The position numbers were made by a program, and so were the translations under genes. A model generated the notes under the pieces. That model saw only the letters and a program-made list of their open reading frames with translations. It was not told the DNA's origin and made no database searches. Shown in pieces: positions 53,483-64,000 of a DNA stretch of 64,000 nucleotides (position 1 is its first letter; the number at the start of each line of letters is the position of its first letter). Source of the stretch: Ascoidea asiatica JCM 7603 (taxonomy: Eukaryota > Fungi > Ascomycota); contig BCKQ01000002.1 of NCBI GenBank assembly GCA_001600695.1, positions 951,184-1,015,183 of the forward strand, written 5' to 3'.

Positions 53483-55594
53483 ATGAGGTTCTTAGCTAGC
53501 AAAAATGATGGTAACAAACATTATCATGATCTCTATAATTCTGGTGATTCAATTTTGAATAAAAATAATGATAAGTTAAAAAAACTAAACGACTCGAACA
53601 TCGAGAATAAGAAAATTTATAAAAAGTTGAAAAATGTTCACATTATTATTCTTGGTTTTATATTTGTAACTTTTTTTATGAAATTTCTAAATAATAGTTC
53701 GAATGATAATATCAGGAACTACTTTTATTTTCAGGAAATTAAAAATATGAAAAATTTTCAATTGAAGAATATAGATGAACCAAGTTTTAGTTCTTTTGAA
53801 GATAATTTAAATAATAATGAAGAAATTTTGAAAACTGGTAAAAATGGAGTAGTATCAAGTGATTCAGAAATTTGTTCGAAATTAGGTATTCAAATTTTAG
53901 AAAATCATAATGGTAATGCTGCGGACGCAGCTGTTACAGTTGGGTTATGTATTGGATTAGTTGATTCCTTTAGTTCTGGGATTGGTGGTGGTGGATTTAT
54001 GCTTTCATATAATTCAAAATTAAAAGAAGTTATAAACATTAATGCAAGAGAAATGGCACCAATTGCATCTTTCAAAGATATGTTTAAAGTTGATAAAAAT
54101 AATGACAATGATAAATCAAAATATTTACATAAATCTCAAATTGGAGGATTATCAATTGCAACACCTGGAGAATTAAAAGGTTATTATAATTTATTTAAAT
54201 TGCATGGATCTGGTAATGTAAGTTGGAAAGAATTAATTTTACCAGTTTCTAAATTGGCTAAAGAAGGTTTTAAAGCAAATCCAGCTTTAGTTTTAAGTGC
54301 TGAAATGATGGGTACATATATTCTTAATAAATGTGAAAAATCAGAGAATGAAATTTTAAAACTAAAAGAAAATTGGAGTTTTTTATTCAAAGATAATAAT
54401 TTTAATAATAATGAGATTATTAAAGAAGGAGATTTAGTTAAAAGAATAAATTTTGGAAATACTTTAGAAATAATTGCAAATAATGGTAGTGATAAAATAT
54501 TTTATGATCCAAATGGACCAATTGTTGAATCATTAATTAAAACAATTCAAGAAAATAATGGAATTTTACAAAAAGAAGATTTTAGTAATTATGAAGTTAA
54601 AATTGAACCTGCATTAAATATATCATTTGGAAAAGATGATAGATATAATATATTCACTTGTGGATCAAGCTCATGTAGTGGACCAGCATTAATTAGTGCA
54701 TTAAATATTATGAATGGATTTAAAGATAATGAAATAAATGAAGAATATAAAGATTTTGAAGGAATATCAACACATCGATTAATTGAAAGTATGAAATGGA
54801 TGGCAAGTGCGAGAAGTAAAATGGGAGATTATTATAAAGAAGAAGAAAATCAAATTAGAATTAATGAAATTATTGATAAAGATTGGTCAAATAAAGCACG
54901 TAATAAAATTAATGATTTTAAAACATTAAAAAGTTGGAAAGATTATGAACCAAGTTATGAAAATAATGAACCACATGGTACAACAAGTTTTTCAATAATT
55001 GATAAAAATAATAATTCAATTTCAATAATTTCAACGGTTAATTTATTATTTGGTTCAAGAGTAATTGATAATAAAACAGGAATAATTTTAAATGATCAAA
55101 TGGATGATTTTTCAATAGAAAATTTTGATAATGGATTTGAATTAAAACCATCAATTTATAATTTTATAAAACCATTGAAAAGACCATTATCATCATCATC
55201 ACCTGTTATAATTTTAGATAAATTTAATAATAATTTACCAGATTTTATTATTTCAGCATCAGGAGGTAGTAGAATTACTACCTCAATTCTACAAAGTATT
55301 ATAAGAAGATATAATTATAAATTGAATTTACTTGAAATTATCTCATTACCAAGATTACATCACCAATTATTACCAAATGAAATTTATATTGAGAAAAAAG
55401 CAAGATTTAATAAAGATGAATTTAATAAAAAAAAATATTTCAATTTAATTAAAGAAATGGAAAAAAGAGGACATAAATTGAAATTAATTGATTCAGTTAC
55501 TGCAATGAATGGAATTTGTAGAAATAAAGAAGAAGAAACTTGGGAAGGTGTAAGTGATTGGTGGAGAAAAAGAGGTTCTAGTTGGAGTTATTAA
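53483..55594 (+). CDS. ECM38: Gamma-glutamyltranspeptidase (type II membrane anchor)
   Basis: GNAADAAV, SSGIGGGGF, AREMAP, TPGELKG, autocleavage site HG|TTSFS, NLLFGS, LNDQMDDFS, RPLSS, GGSRI, RLHHQLLP. Confidence 0.96.
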   Translation: MRFLASKNDGNKHYHDLYNSGDSILNKNNDKLKKLNDSNIENKKIYKKLKNVHIIILGFIFVTFFMKFLNNSSNDNIRNYFYFQEIKNMKNFQLKNIDEPSFSSFEDNLNNNEEILKTGKNGVVSSDSEICSKLGIQILENHNGNAADAAVTVGLCIGLVDSFSSGIGGGGFMLSYNSKLKEVININAREMAPIASFKDMFKVDKNNDNDKSKYLHKSQIGGLSIATPGELKGYYNLFKLHGSGNVSWKELILPVSKLAKEGFKANPALVLSAEMMGTYILNKCEKSENEILKLKENWSFLFKDNNFNNNEIIKEGDLVKRINFGNTLEIIANNGSDKIFYDPNGPIVESLIKTIQENNGILQKEDFSNYEVKIEPALNISFGKDDRYNIFTCGSSSCSGPALISALNIMNGFKDNEINEEYKDFEGISTHRLIESMKWMASARSKMGDYYKEEENQIRINEIIDKDWSNKARNKINDFKTLKSWKDYEPSYENNEPHGTTSFSIIDKNNNSISIISTVNLLFGSRVIDNKTGIILNDQMDDFSIENFDNGFELKPSIYNFIKPLKRPLSSSSPVIILDKFNNNLPDFIISASGGSRITTSILQSIIRRYNYKLNLLEIISLPRLHHQLLPNEIYIEKKARFNKDEFNKKKYFNLIKEMEKRGHKLKLIDSVTAMNGICRNKEEETWEGVSDWWRKRGSSWSY

Positions 55595-57813: not shown

Positions 57814-60800
57814 ATGAATACGATTCCAATTCCTTCAAGATTTCCTTCTTCTGTAGTATCAGCAAATAATTATCTGGAAATTGATAATGATAATAATAAT
57901 ATAAATAATAACAATAATAAAGATACTGCTTTAGTATTATCAACTTTACAATTAATTCAACATTTTGATAGATCAACAGTTAAAGATTTGATTCATCTTT
58001 TAACTTCAGAAATTAAAAAACATGGTTCAAAAACTCCATATATTTTTTTACCTTTTAGATCTCAAAATAATGATAAAAATTTATCTTCATTTTTAACAGA
58101 AATTTTATCAAATTTAAAAAATTTAAATTTAATTAAATCAATAATACGAAAAACTGATGTTTTTACTTTAATGTCTGCTTTAAAATATATTTGGTGTAGA
58201 TTACCAAAAGATTCAATTATTGGTTGGGATTCTTATTTAAAATTTAAAAATCATGAAAAGTTTTTAAATTATCCAAAAAATGCATTTTTAGAAATTATGC
58301 CAAGTTGTTTACCTTCTGCTGATTCGGCTTCAATCGTCTATGATTTTTTAGATTTATTAGTTAGAATTGCTGCTTATACTAAAGAAAATAAATTATCTGG
58401 TAGAAAAATATCAAAATTAGCTGGTTTATATGCCTTTGAAGGTCCATGTCCAATTTTTCCTTCAAATAATAATAATTTTGAAGATAAACAAAAATCTTTT
58501 TCAAATGGATTAGAATCTTGGATTCCTGCCGCCGATGCAACTTTTCATTTACTTTTATCTTTTTTAAGATCAATGACTCCAGATGAAGACTCAAAAAAAG
58601 TTCAAATCCAAAAACCTTTATTGAATTTAATCAATTCAAATGCCTATCCACCTGAAATTACTCCTTTTTCTATTAGAAAATCTTTAAATCCATCTTCTAC
58701 AAAAGCTCAATTAATTACAATTCCTTTAATAACAATATATTCTCAAGTTTTAGCTTCGGATCCTTTAGATTTAATTAAAACTACAAGTAAAACTTTATCT
58801 TTCGAAAGATCTGATTTATTTGAAAATCAAAATGATTATCAAATTTTAAAATCTTTATTTAAAGATATAAAAAACAATAATTCTGCTTATATTTATAAAA
58901 AATTAACTAAAGAATCTGGTGGTGTTGTTAAAAAATTATGTGAAGAAAATAATACGTCTTTACTAAAAAATGGTTGGGCTGATGAATCTGATATATTCTC
59001 AAGTTCTATAAATTCAACTTCAACTTCAAATTCTCATGATTATGATGATGATGTTCATATTAATTCTAATTTGCCTTTACATAAAGCCACTGTTTCAAGT
59101 ATTCCTATAGATGATTATTATATTTGGGCTTGGATGTCATCATTATCCCCAGAATCTTCAATTGTTAAAAGATCTCATTTTGGAAATTCATTAGTAGCAG
59201 AGTTTGAATATCAAAAAGATCAAGTTAAATGGATCATAATCCAAGAGGTTAAAATGGAAGATCCGAGTAATCCTCAATTTCAAAAACAAATTAAAAAGGA
59301 AAAGTCTAAGAAAGATTCTTTGAAAAATAAAAAATCAAAAGATTTTATCGATTTCGATAAACCAATTCCTATGATGGATGACGATTATAATGACGGTGAT
59401 GTAACTAGATCAAGTAGTCATTATACTACTAATACAAATGTTTCTTCTAGTCGTAGTAATAGTATGAGATCCTTTTCTGGTGCAAAAATTAAAAAAATGT
59501 TTACATTCAAACATAAGAAAAAAGAAGAACCTAAAAAAGAAGATTTTAGATTATCTAGATTCATTATAGATGAAGGTATTGGTGAACTCCCAGAGATCCA
59601 GACAGATAATTATAGACTAAGTATGCCATTAGGCCAATTTAATTTTGATGATGTAGCCAATTCCAATGGTGGTAACAAAATATTAATTTCTCTGTCTCCA
59701 GAAGAAGAAGCTAATAACCAGAGTTCTCTTACTTTGACTGATAAAACTGAATCTCCTAAGAAAAACATATCACCTAAAAGAAAATCGATGTATGATGAAT
59801 ATTTTATTTCCAATGATATCATGCTATCTCCTCCTGTATCCCCAGATAGAATCAAAAGTCAATTTTTTGACGATGAAAGTAGCACAGCTAGTAGAAATAG
59901 TCTAAAGGACATAGTTAATTTACTTGATGATTTAGTTGTTCAATCAGACGAGGTCGAAAAACAACTACATTCCTCTTCTTCTATCACTCCTGATCAAAGC
60001 CGTCCATCAACATTTAGTACAAATGACAAAGAAGTCAGAGAATCTATAAGTACAATAGACTCTTTAAATTCATCTTCAATAAAGAAGGTAATTTCCCCAG
60101 TCTCCACTGCTATACCAAATCCTTATTCCAATGAAAATATTGATGTATATCCCGAACCGACTGTTTCTCCAGTGGAAATGGAATTTAGTAATATTAACCG
60201 AAATGAAGAGAGTCAATCAACTCCAAATTTAAGAGCACCTACCATAGCAACTAAAAGGAATAGTTATCATCTGATAAAAAGTACCTCTCCGATTAGAAAT
60301 TCTCCATTACGTCAAAGGATGAGCTTTGATGGAAATGGTGAAGAACCTGTAATTCAAGAGTATTTAGATGGCTCTCCAGAGAATCCTTCTCAAATCATTC
60401 CTGTTGTATCTGATAATTCCAATAAATATCCAAATTCTTTAAACTCAAATAAGTCAAATCGTTATTCTGCTCAGTCTTTTCAAAATAATCCGCAACATAC
60501 CTTACCTCCACCACCTCTTCTGAATCAACAACAACCTACTCAACCTCAACATCCCGTATATAATTCCCAACAACAACAACCACCGCAACAACATTATCCA
60601 ATTGCACGAGAAGTTGAACCGCAATATCAAAGTAATAATTCCGTTCAACAAAATCAATTTTACGATACAAGAAGTTCACCTCAGCAAAACGGATCATCAA
60701 CAAGTGTTCACAATACTAATGGACCTCCTGCTGGGACAAGTCCATATGGTCAACAGCCAAATAGAACCTCTAGACCCAATAGCTTTGACCAAAGACCTCA

Positions 60801-61779
60801 GTCATATGATAATTTCAATAATCAATACAAAAGAAACTCAAATTCTCCAGTTAAAAGGGTACCTAATCCATATCCCCAAGGTGCTCCTCAACCAAATGCT
60901 CCTCGTATTGCTCCTCCACTGCACAACCCACCTCCACCTTCTCGAAATCCACCTAATATTCAAGGAAATAGTCCCCAAAGTCATCCACAACAACCTATGA
61001 CACAACCTCCTCCAAATAATGGTTATTACAACAATGATTACCCTAAAGATCCAAACCCTCAACAAAATTATTATGATAATAATTATCCTCCTAACCAACA
61101 AAGAATGCCTAATGGGCCTCCTGGGAACTATCCTCCTCCACATTCTCAACCTCAGTATATTCCTCAGCAACCACCCCAAAATCAACAAGAATATTATTAT
61201 AATCAAAATAATGGTTATAATGAAGGTGGTTATTATCAACCGCAATATCAAATTCCACCATCACAACAATATCAAGGGCCACCACCAGCCCCTTCAGGAC
61301 CTCCAGGACCACCAGGACAGCAAGGTCAATATCGAAATAGCATTCAAAAAGCACAACCATATAGAGGTGCTATAAGATATCCAACATCTAGAAACTCAAA
61401 TCCTATACAACCACCACCTCCAAATATGCCTTACAATCCAAACCCTAACCATAGTCCAAGGCTACAAGGAAATCAACCTTCTCCTATTCAAGTTCCTGGA
61501 CCCAATGGTCAGATATATTCCCCTCCTGTAAATGGAAACAATTTTTCTCCAGCTCCAAGAGGACAAAATTATAGAAATTCTGGCGGACCCATGTCACCTT
61601 CAATGCCATCAAATCCATATGGTCAGCCTAATCCCAATCCACCAATGTCTAGAAGTGATTTAGCAATAGCTAAAATGCCTCCTGCTTCTGGATTTAGTAA
61701 ATTGCATGGCCCTGGTAGCAAAAAGTCAGATAAGAAAAATTTAAGAGCTGCTTTAGTAGGAGGCGATTTTGGAATTTAA
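57814..61779 (+). CDS. MSB1: Msb1 morphogenesis/polarity protein (N-terminal RhoGAP-like fold, Pro/Gln-rich tail)
   Basis: IH..T.EIK..G...PYIFLPFR, LKYIWCRLP, YP..AFLEIMP.CL, IVYDFLDLL, NKLSGRKISK, IDDYYIWAWMSSLS, and C-terminal KLHG...GDFGI. Confidence 0.92.
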   Translation: MNTIPIPSRFPSSVVSANNYLEIDNDNNNINNNNNKDTALVLSTLQLIQHFDRSTVKDLIHLLTSEIKKHGSKTPYIFLPFRSQNNDKNLSSFLTEILSNLKNLNLIKSIIRKTDVFTLMSALKYIWCRLPKDSIIGWDSYLKFKNHEKFLNYPKNAFLEIMPSCLPSADSASIVYDFLDLLVRIAAYTKENKLSGRKISKLAGLYAFEGPCPIFPSNNNNFEDKQKSFSNGLESWIPAADATFHLLLSFLRSMTPDEDSKKVQIQKPLLNLINSNAYPPEITPFSIRKSLNPSSTKAQLITIPLITIYSQVLASDPLDLIKTTSKTLSFERSDLFENQNDYQILKSLFKDIKNNNSAYIYKKLTKESGGVVKKLCEENNTSLLKNGWADESDIFSSSINSTSTSNSHDYDDDVHINSNLPLHKATVSSIPIDDYYIWAWMSSLSPESSIVKRSHFGNSLVAEFEYQKDQVKWIIIQEVKMEDPSNPQFQKQIKKEKSKKDSLKNKKSKDFIDFDKPIPMMDDDYNDGDVTRSSSHYTTNTNVSSSRSNSMRSFSGAKIKKMFTFKHKKKEEPKKEDFRLSRFIIDEGIGELPEIQTDNYRLSMPLGQFNFDDVANSNGGNKILISLSPEEEANNQSSLTLTDKTESPKKNISPKRKSMYDEYFISNDIMLSPPVSPDRIKSQFFDDESSTASRNSLKDIVNLLDDLVVQSDEVEKQLHSSSSITPDQSRPSTFSTNDKEVRESISTIDSLNSSSIKKVISPVSTAIPNPYSNENIDVYPEPTVSPVEMEFSNINRNEESQSTPNLRAPTIATKRNSYHLIKSTSPIRNSPLRQRMSFDGNGEEPVIQEYLDGSPENPSQIIPVVSDNSNKYPNSLNSNKSNRYSAQSFQNNPQHTLPPPPLLNQQQPTQPQHPVYNSQQQQPPQQHYPIAREVEPQYQSNNSVQQNQFYDTRSSPQQNGSSTSVHNTNGPPAGTSPYGQQPNRTSRPNSFDQRPQSYDNFNNQYKRNSNSPVKRVPNPYPQGAPQPNAPRIAPPLHNPPPPSRNPPNIQGNSPQSHPQQPMTQPPPNNGYYNNDYPKDPNPQQNYYDNNYPPNQQRMPNGPPGNYPPPHSQPQYIPQQPPQNQQEYYYNQNNGYNEGGYYQPQYQIPPSQQYQGPPPAPSGPPGPPGQQGQYRNSIQKAQPYRGAIRYPTSRNSNPIQPPPPNMPYNPNPNHSPRLQGNQPSPIQVPGPNGQIYSPPVNGNNFSPAPRGQNYRNSGGPMSPSMPSNPYGQPNPNPPMSRSDLAIAKMPPASGFSKLHGPGSKKSDKKNLRAALVGGDFGI

Positions 61780-62800
61780 ATCTACTTTAATGTTACACTC
61801 TTGTTTGTGTTTTGTTTTTTTTATTAAAGTTATTTTACTTTTAAAAATAAATCTGTGTTATTTTTTCATTGCTTTTTTGTTTGTTATTTTTTTATTAGAT
61901 GTTAAAGTTGTGTTATTTTCTTTTTCTTTATTTTTTCTCTTGTATTTCTATCCTCAAGCGATACTGAAGTAATTTACGTATTAAAACTCATTGAATTTTT
62001 ATTATTATTTTTTTTCTTTATTTTCTCTTCATGCTATATATATATATATTAACATATTGATATTGAGTCTTTATCATTAGTCACTCTACTATCAAAAAAG
62101 TGCTTTCCTTTAAGAAATAATTATATTTTGTCTTATTTCATACTACTAGTGATAAAATTACTTTCTTTTCAAAAGCATTAATCTCCTAAAAAATGAAATT
62201 TATGAGAAAATTGCTATAAAGCTAAGGTTGATTTTGCATGGAGACTAAATACTATTAACTGCTAAAACTTTAAATTCAGTTTCCTACAAGCTTTATTTCA
62301 AATATGGAATTCAATTTTTTTAGTTCATTATTACCAATATCAGAGTAATAATGTTTTTGCAGTTTAGTATTGTTGTTATATTCAAACTATAATCAAGCTC
62401 AACAATTCCTGAGTAATTTAGTCAAGTTACAATAATATGGGATAATTGCAGTTCTTTAATGACCCTTTACAATTATCCATTAAACTAATTTTTTTGAGAA
62501 AGGCTTTAAAATTTTATGTGATTTTTAACTGATTGTAGATTAAATAGATAAATCCTTCAATCGTATTTTCGATTAAGATCACAATTAGATAACAAACTAC
62601 GAATTGATACCATCATTTCCCCACAAAAAGTAGTCATCAATTGATCATAGTATATGCTCTTTCCATAATAGCAAACCAGATCAAATAGAAAATCTTCTAT
62701 ATTAAAATATGGAATAATATTGAGACATTATTACACCATACAATAGAAGCAATATAATAGATTTGGGTGGAATATATTATTGTATAAATATAAGAGCTTA

Positions 62801-62824
62801 TTTCCTAATCCGGTCACTTCAATG
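62801..62824. promoter_or_regulatory. Composite Mcm1 site + CATTG (MATa2-like) element, distal copy
   Basis: TTTCCTAATCCGG-TCACTT-CAATG: an Mcm1-type CC-N6-GG box, a 6-bp spacer, then CAATG (CATTG on the minus strand). Confidence 0.65.
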
Positions 62825-63040
62825 ATGATTCTTAACTCGAATATAAGAGTCTCAGCCAACAAAAATGGTATTTCAGGGCAAAGCAATACAAAGATTCGAT
62901 TTGAAGCTATTAAGGGTTTCCACAACAATTCAAAAATCATTGGGCAAAATTATAAACTGGAGGTCAAAGCCAAACGTAGTGAATTTCTATACCAGTTCCA
63001 CAACTTTAAAAATAATTGTTGAAAAGTATGTGATAAACTT

Positions 63041-63064
63041 TTTCCATTTTAGGTGATTTCAATG
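63041..63064. promoter_or_regulatory. Composite Mcm1 site + CATTG (MATa2-like) element, proximal copy
   Basis: TTTCCATTTTAGG-TGATTT-CAATG: a perfect CArG box CC(A/T)6GG with the same spacer length and CAATG as the distal copy. Confidence 0.7.
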
Positions 63065-63255
63065 TAATAAAACTAAAAATTAGAGCATTTGTCTTCACAT
63101 TAACAAGTCTCCACAAAAAACTATTCGCTTATTTTTCCATACATTGATTAACACACTCTTTAGTAAAAAACTCGTCTTTTCTGATGCGCCATTAATGAAA
63201 ATCTTTTTATAATTCATGGCAAAAAATCAATCATAATTCCTTATTACCAAAATGA

Positions 63256-63261
63256 TATAAA
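63256..63261 (+). promoter_or_regulatory. Candidate TATA box of the pheromone gene
   Basis: TATAAA about 105 bp upstream of the ATG at 63363; weak evidence in AT-rich DNA. Confidence 0.3.
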
Positions 63262-63362
63262 TTAGAATGGTTATCCATACTTCTAAAATAAAATGATCTA
63301 TATTTTTTTTTAATTATCAATTATCAATTATTATAATTATTTAACTCTAACTTCCTCTCAAA

Positions 63363-63561
63363 ATGCAATCTTCTTCAAACACTCAATCTCAAACTCCAAA
63401 AGATCAAGATCTTCCAGGTATGTAATGTCATCTCTCATTTAGAGAAATAGAACAAAATTAAAAAAATTGCTGTCTCCTCACCCTTTTGCATAGAATATAA
63501 TTGCTAACAAATACTATTAATAGATGGTACAACCGTTCCTTCTGGATGTGTTATTGCTTAA
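63363..63561 (+). CDS. MFA1: a-factor-type lipopeptide mating pheromone precursor, two exons: join(63363..63417,63524..63561), 30 aa; not in the ORF track
   Basis: AAA-ATG context. Intron 63418-63523: GTATGT donor, TGCTAAC (63502), TAG acceptor. The spliced product MQSSSNTQSQTPKDQDLPDGTTVPSGCVIA* ends in the CaaX box CVIA, identical to S. cerevisiae a-factor. It has an MQ start, a polar pro-region and two upstream Mcm1 composite sites. Confidence 0.88.
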
Positions 63562-64000
63562 ATTATATATAAAATCCTCAGTGGGTAATTTTAAAAGATG
63601 CTTTAGATACGTTTGATTTATGATATACATTTATTTGCTATGCTACAATATTATATCTAGGGTAAATTGTTTCAAAAGCATTCCCTCATTTTTTTTTCCT
63701 CTTACTTCTTAATCTTCATTTCAAATATGAATCACAAACAATAAAACTGCAAAAATTTTTTTTTGATGAATAAATATCCTTTTTGATTGAGCGATAATTT
63801 CTTTAAGCAGTAGAATGTATTTTCATGAAAATCAAAAAAAAAAAAAACTTTTTGCTCTTCTCTGCAATTATTAAGCATATCTTCTTCTTAATACCAAAAT
63901 ATATTTACTTTTGAATCCCGAAATTGAGACCAATAATGGAGAACTAATCATTAAAAATGTTAGAGCCGGGTTTATGCAATGGCAGCACAATTTCAGCACC

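Follow-up and report, generated by a model that had tools for sequence, protein, structure and literature searches.

The a-factor genes of Saccharomyces cerevisiae, MFA1 and MFA2, are intronless and encode precursors of 36-38 amino acids with a hydrophobic, aromatic mature peptide, and in Mfa1 the residues K-K-D-N are followed by 12 residues up to the cysteine. In that species the MFA genes are repressed by alpha2-Mcm1 and are not activated by a2-Mcm1. For the genus considered here, three single-exon a-factor candidates of Ascoidea rubescens have been listed as phyloGroup_12 in Supplementary Table 1 of Srikant, Gaudet & Murray (10.1101/2021.09.28.462209), a table that has no rows for Ascoideales species other than A. 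rubescens. By the authors' own statement their pipeline is blind to intron-containing pheromone genes, for which they name S. pombe, and Yarrowia lipolytica has one intron-bearing copy, YlMFA4, among its four (10.1101/2021.09.28.462209). [quoted passage not shown] The species studied here, A. asiatica, is a heterothallic diploid with a STE20-containing MAT locus (Krassowski et al. 2019, PMC6692504). We have explored a 64-kb stretch of its genome (the window, C2:951184-1015183 of its assembly) and found a short split gene that, to our knowledge, is an unannotated gene for a predicted mating pheromone. Our reading, to which we give a probability of roughly 85%, is that this locus is a functional copy of a multicopy family for a farnesylated (a-factor-type) Ascoidea pheromone, and that it is spliced and probably a-cell-specific.

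The gene lies on the forward strand. Exon 1 (63363..63417, 55 nt) opens with the ATG at 63363 and holds 18 codons and the first base of codon 19, covering a polar pro-region and the start of the mature part. It is followed by a 106-nt phase-1 spliceosomal intron (63418..63523), predicted from its splice signals and from comparison with the paralogues, and then by exon 2 (63524..63561, 38 nt), which supplies the last two bases of codon 19, the residues GTTVPSG, the CVIA box and the TAA stop; its 3' end reads TGT GTT ATT GCT TAA. On inspection of the sequence, the 5' splice site is GTATGT (63418-63423), the branch point is TGCTAAC (63502-63508) and the 3' splice site is TAG (63521-63523), 16 nt 3' of the branch A. 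The first-pass annotation of this DNA had given the same ATG, 106-nt intron and CVIA exon, and both coordinates and signals came out identical when the sequence was re-inspected. Without splicing, the frame reaches a stop two codons into the intron and leaves a 20-aa ORF ending ...LPGM. When both strands of the window were scanned for a split-CaaX pattern (ATG, short ORF, GTAWGT, TRCTAAC, first YAG, CaaX-stop), this gene was the sole match, and the structure was found in none of 100 first-order Markov simulations of the 64-kb window. Because the split-gene structure is common to seven copies in the genome, it lies far beyond chance. A 30-aa ORF starting at 63524 was rejected as an alternative reading, as its ATG is formed from junction bases of the window copy and is absent in the other six of the seven copies; antisense ORFs at the locus were rejected likewise. 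An Rfam scan of 61800-64000 returned sub-threshold chance matches only, none of them inside the intron. The neighbouring gene (57814-61779, forward strand) encodes an Msb1/Mug8-domain protein (PF08101) of 1321 aa, with a very long C-terminal half rich in Q, N and P, which is closest to that of A. rubescens (58% identity over the domain). The order gamma-glutamyltranspeptidase (53483-55594) then MSB1 is kept in A. rubescens, and a scan for split or unsplit CaaX genes 3' of MSB1 at that GGT-MSB1 locus yielded none that was convincing.

The first-pass annotation had proposed a splice-aware search for paralogues, and a DNA search of the species' own assembly (20.3 Mb, 71 contigs) gives seven complete copies in which the CaaX exon and the intron phase are conserved; a pattern for the end of exon 2 likewise has seven exact copies in the genome and no control matches. 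One of these is a tandem partner, which sits on the same strand just past the window end, 2.26 kb downstream (C2:1016806-1016970, or 65623-65787 in window numbering), with a 72-nt intron and its own operator at -867, and would encode a Y-type isoform (SLPYGTVVPSGC). Contig C36 has two further complete copies, and C20, C44 and C58 have a single one each. If the assembly comes from a diploid, some of those on very small contigs (C44, C58) may be allelic and not separate loci. There is also an incomplete copy at the end of contig C36, interrupted by the contig end, and an exon-1-only relic (C66:1246-1300) that has a CTG codon inside and GTAAGT after it and is without exon 2, operator or TATA box, which is probably a pseudogene or an assembly fragment.

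Comparison of the seven copies provides most of what can be said about the intron. Exon 1 is exactly 55 nt and exon 2 exactly 38 nt in every one of them, and the introns, of 72-110 nt, sit at an identical phase-1 position. Mean pairwise identity is 0.87 in each exon, 0.49 in the intron and 0.49-0.60 in the 200-nt flanks. All seven introns fit the budding-yeast format (GTAWGT, a TACTAAC-type branch point and the first YAG 10-30 nt on), with GTAAGT or GTATGT as donor and TACTAAC or TGCTAAC as branch point. An alternative acceptor that would lose CVIA had been considered as a possibility, and in 7/7 copies CVIA comes into frame when the first AG 3' of the branch point serves as acceptor. For splice signals, our reference gene in this genome was ACT1 (C1:413937-415200, reverse strand), which has two short 5' introns, after codon 3 and after codon 8, with the signals GTAAGT/GTACGT, TACTAAC and TAG. 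The conservation of exons and splice signals despite the divergence of the intron argues strongly that the intron is real and would be removed as predicted. The spliced frame itself leaves a mark on exon 2, where pS is 0.276 and pN 0.041 across the seven copies: five of its 11 codons vary synonymously only, one codon also changes the residue (T/V), and the last 18 nt, including CVIA-TAA, are identical throughout. These values indicate purifying selection on exon 2 as read in the spliced frame. No synonymous excess is seen in the exon-1 pro-region (pS 0.11, pN 0.12).

Independent support for the splice model comes from A. rubescens, since its intronless homologue is collinear with the spliced product. 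In all seven A. asiatica copies the predicted product has 30 amino acids and ends in CVIA. The A. rubescens candidates are 29-30 residues in length; the CDS of two is 93 nt, which equals the 55+38 nt found here, and that of the third is one codon shorter. Both sets share the MQ(P/S)S start, K-D-N at the same place (in two of the seven copies here), P-x-G-T, a Pro three residues before the Cys and CVIA-stop; they align without gaps at about 50% identity, as counted by eye from the published table, and both are multicopy. The P-type copies (C20, C58) match one A. rubescens candidate at 15/30 positions, with no gap, and codon 19, at the junction, aligns with the second Pro of the A. rubescens motif D-P-P-G-T. 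The first-pass annotation had called the mature sequence unfamiliar, which does not hold in view of this identity, whereas its central proposal, a short intron-split precursor of a-factor type whose CaaX box is in frame only once spliced, is backed by the paralogues, by selection on exon 2 and by the collinearity with A. rubescens. There are nevertheless clear differences between the sister species. The A. rubescens genes are intronless, whereas a phase-1 intron is present in all copies here, and the mature parts read GTYFPNIC in A. rubescens and GT(T/V)VPSGC in A. asiatica. A similar likeness extends to S. cerevisiae MFA1/MFA2, which have an MQPS-type start, a polar pro-region ending K-D-N, 12 residues to the Cys and CVIA, and where more than one gene also gives rise to isoforms.

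The seven copies encode four isoforms. Variation in the presumed mature part falls on residue 16 (D/S), residue 19 (D/S/P/Y) and residue 22 (T/V); residue 19 corresponds to the splice-junction codon and is D in the window copy and S, P or Y elsewhere. Residues 13-15 are K-D-N in two copies and K-D-Q in the other five, including the window copy. A cut after residue 15 is likely because of these two K-D-N copies and the alignment with Mfa1 and the A. rubescens peptides. The mature peptide of the window gene would then likely be of 12 residues, DLPDGTTVPSGC, and those of the other isoforms DLPSGTTVPSGC, DLPPGTTVPSGC and the Y-type peptide given above. A mature peptide of 11 residues had been suggested earlier; the alignment and the K-D-N copies favour one residue more. 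The accompanying remark that KDQD replaces the usual Asn is correct for the window copy, which has K-D-Q; two members of the family have K-D-N. As Gln, not the usual Asn, precedes the cut in five of the seven copies, the exact N-terminus of the mature peptide is uncertain. The predicted peptide is also unusually hydrophilic and without aromatic residues.

Based on these comparisons, and by analogy with S. cerevisiae Mfa1/2, the following sequence of events can be proposed. The primary transcript would carry a constitutive phase-1 intron inside codon 19, and its splicing would join the 55-nt and 38-nt exons into the message for a 30-residue precursor ending CVIA. The Cys would be farnesylated, VIA removed and the Cys carboxymethylated, and the polar N-terminal part would be cut off after K-D-(N/Q), leaving a 12-residue lipopeptide. 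The family would thereby yield four isoforms, differing mainly at the splice-junction codon (D, S, P or Y). Transcription would probably be made a-cell-specific by one or two operators of Mcm1 + HMG(a2) type per promoter, activation by Mcm1 and a2 being the ancestral budding-yeast route to a-specific gene expression. Against this reading count the Gln before the presumed cut in five of seven copies, the hydrophilic mature part, the flat pS/pN of exon 1 and searches of the assembly that detected no exporter of Ste6 type.

The putative control elements lie 5' of the gene, on the same strand. The operator pattern consists of an Mcm1-like CC-N6-RR box, six bases and CAATG (TTCAATG). The distal composite operator (62804..62824, 559 nt 5' of the ATG) has the Mcm1-like box CCTAATCCGG, 6 nt and CAATG as an HMG/a2-like half site, and is the sole loose-pattern match in the 64-kb window; the proximal one (63044..63064, 319 nt 5' of the ATG) has CCATTTTAGG, 6 nt and CAATG. 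A TATA box, TATAAAT (63256..63262), follows 107 nt 5' of the ATG, and ATATAAAT is conserved between -107 and -138 in each of the seven copies. The composite operator recurs with the same 16-nt register in all seven promoters, in one or two copies each, at about -300 to -350 and -550 to -620, with the tandem partner's at -867. The copies C36a, C44, C20 and C58 also have a second, proximal operator (about -300 to -350). Genome-wide, the strict pattern has 16 matches against four for a reversed control; 12 of the 16 are at pheromone copies or contig ends, 11 of them upstream of pheromone copies. The matches at the ends of two contigs, C58:4950-4972 (forward) and C45:9-31 (reverse), both point off the contig, which suggests that further pheromone copies may be hidden in assembly gaps.

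Outside the family, STE2, the gene for the alpha-factor receptor, has a near-perfect operator at -642 (chance about 0.003, as estimated from base composition), and the composite operator is absent from both STE3 promoters. Since the operator is present in all pheromone promoters and at STE2, and not at STE3, we infer, with moderate confidence, that transcription of the pheromone family would be a-cell-specific. The genes downstream of the other four strict matches encode an aspartyl protease, a chitin synthase and an ABCC transporter, the fourth being a 170-aa ORF, and none of these matches is significant singly because their number equals the four control matches. The gene for the aspartyl protease (580 aa, C1:394256-395998), which has its strict operator 558 nt upstream and in the same orientation, is a candidate for a Bar1-like a-specific protease. 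The arrangement as a whole resembles that of W. anomalus, with a family of MFA paralogues and a-specific genes that have a composite activator site for Mcm1 and a2 (10.1101/565234). Unlike the W. anomalus sites, the operator described here is predicted from sequence, with TTCAATG as its a2-like half.

On the receiving side, the genome has two intact STE3 (a-factor receptor) genes on large contigs (C1:278525-279904 and C4:1348575-1349909; 459 and 444 aa), which are not alleles because they are only 64% identical. With four pheromone isoforms and two STE3 genes, whether receptors are isoform-specific becomes a question. For export, searches of the whole assembly detected no full-size ABCB (Ste6-type) transporter; they gave three ABCB half-transporters, several ABCC genes (Ycf1-like, Yor1/MRP-like) and PDR-type genes. 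The ABC transporter 3' of an operator match was rejected as a Ste6 because it is of ABCC type, and the other full-size ABC_membrane transporters that we examined were rejected on the same ground. The absent Ste6 signal could mean that the gene has truly been lost, that it falls in an assembly gap or that the search missed it. At C8:135-161 kb there is a cluster of three closely related ABCC (MRP/Yor1-like) transporter genes, with a strict operator, not significant alone, 398 nt upstream of the middle gene (C8:148937-153823, 1628 aa). With no Ste6 found, an operator at this ABCC transporter is suggestive.

Part of this evidence could be read differently. The family might consist of small prenylated peptides with a non-mating role, for instance a membrane-anchored micropeptide, in which the likeness to a-factor is merely one of format. 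A hydrophilic mature part devoid of aromatic residues and an assembly in which no Ste6-type exporter was detected would both fit such a role, and the A. rubescens homologues are themselves computational candidates. We consider it improbable all the same, as the layout is that of S. cerevisiae Mfa1 (MQ(P/S)S, K-D-N, a 12-residue stretch to the Cys, CVIA), the family is multicopy as other MFA families are, and its promoter element is common to STE2 and absent from STE3; we also know of no other conserved class of 30-aa CaaX peptides in budding yeasts. If the family is accepted as one of pheromone genes, the window copy could still be a decaying or poorly expressed member that makes little or no pheromone. 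It alone has TGCTAAC in place of TACTAAC, Asp for codon 19 and Ser for codon 4; its donor is GTATGT, and in the seven-copy alignment no other proximal promoter diverges as much. TGCTAAC is, however, a tolerated branch-point variant in budding yeasts, and the copy retains an intact frame and CaaX box, the usual length of both exons, a TATA box and two operators, with five differences in 93 nt from the C36a copy, so that decay of this copy seems very unlikely.

The intron invites a further proposal, which is compatible with a functional pheromone gene: its splicing could be a regulated switch for pheromone output, responding to mating type or starvation. An unspliced transcript does not have the CaaX box in frame, and the intron has been kept in all copies although the sister species is intronless. 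Even so, the splice signals are consensus or near-consensus, as in ACT1, the intron interior shows 49% identity with no sign of a common regulatory element and no Rfam match, and the promoter operators already account for cell-type control. We therefore see little prospect for a regulated switch, and the statement in the first-pass annotation that splicing gates pheromone production is true only in the sense in which it is true of any intron.

Taken as a constitutively spliced pheromone family, the A. asiatica genes join a small group of precedents. Y. lipolytica YlMFA4 and the M-factor genes of S. pombe are likewise a-factor-type ORFs split by a canonical intron and hidden from CaaX-ORF screens, and an intron in an a-factor gene is as such not new. 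In Y. lipolytica, though, the intron is found in one of four copies, whereas here it is found in every copy at the same position. Because the present copies are all interrupted by an intron, the published single-exon screen has such genes only for the sister species; the earlier expectation that single-exon CaaX screens would miss this gene agrees with the inability of the Srikant et al. pipeline to find intron-containing genes. As A. rubescens, in common with most budding yeasts, has intronless copies, a tentative account, for which we would not claim even odds, is that the intron was a lineage-specific gain into the mature-peptide part after the split from A. rubescens and spread with the family, that the junction residue has since become the most variable one, and that the isoforms are perhaps read differently by the two Ste3 receptors.

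In conclusion, our results do not describe a new kind of system; what makes the family notable is an intron in every copy against none in the sister species, together with the account it gives of an omission from a published screen. Among computational surveys of yeast a-factors, the largest is blind to intron-bearing genes and has no Ascoideales entry beyond A. rubescens, and the genes described here would fill that gap. They would also supply the missing pheromone for a species that has drawn interest through its ambiguous decoding of CUG and a MAT locus that, unusually, contains STE20. A pair of sister species with the intron present in one and absent in the other offers material on intron gain or loss in budding yeasts, just as the natural isoforms and two Ste3 receptors offer material on pheromone-receptor specificity.
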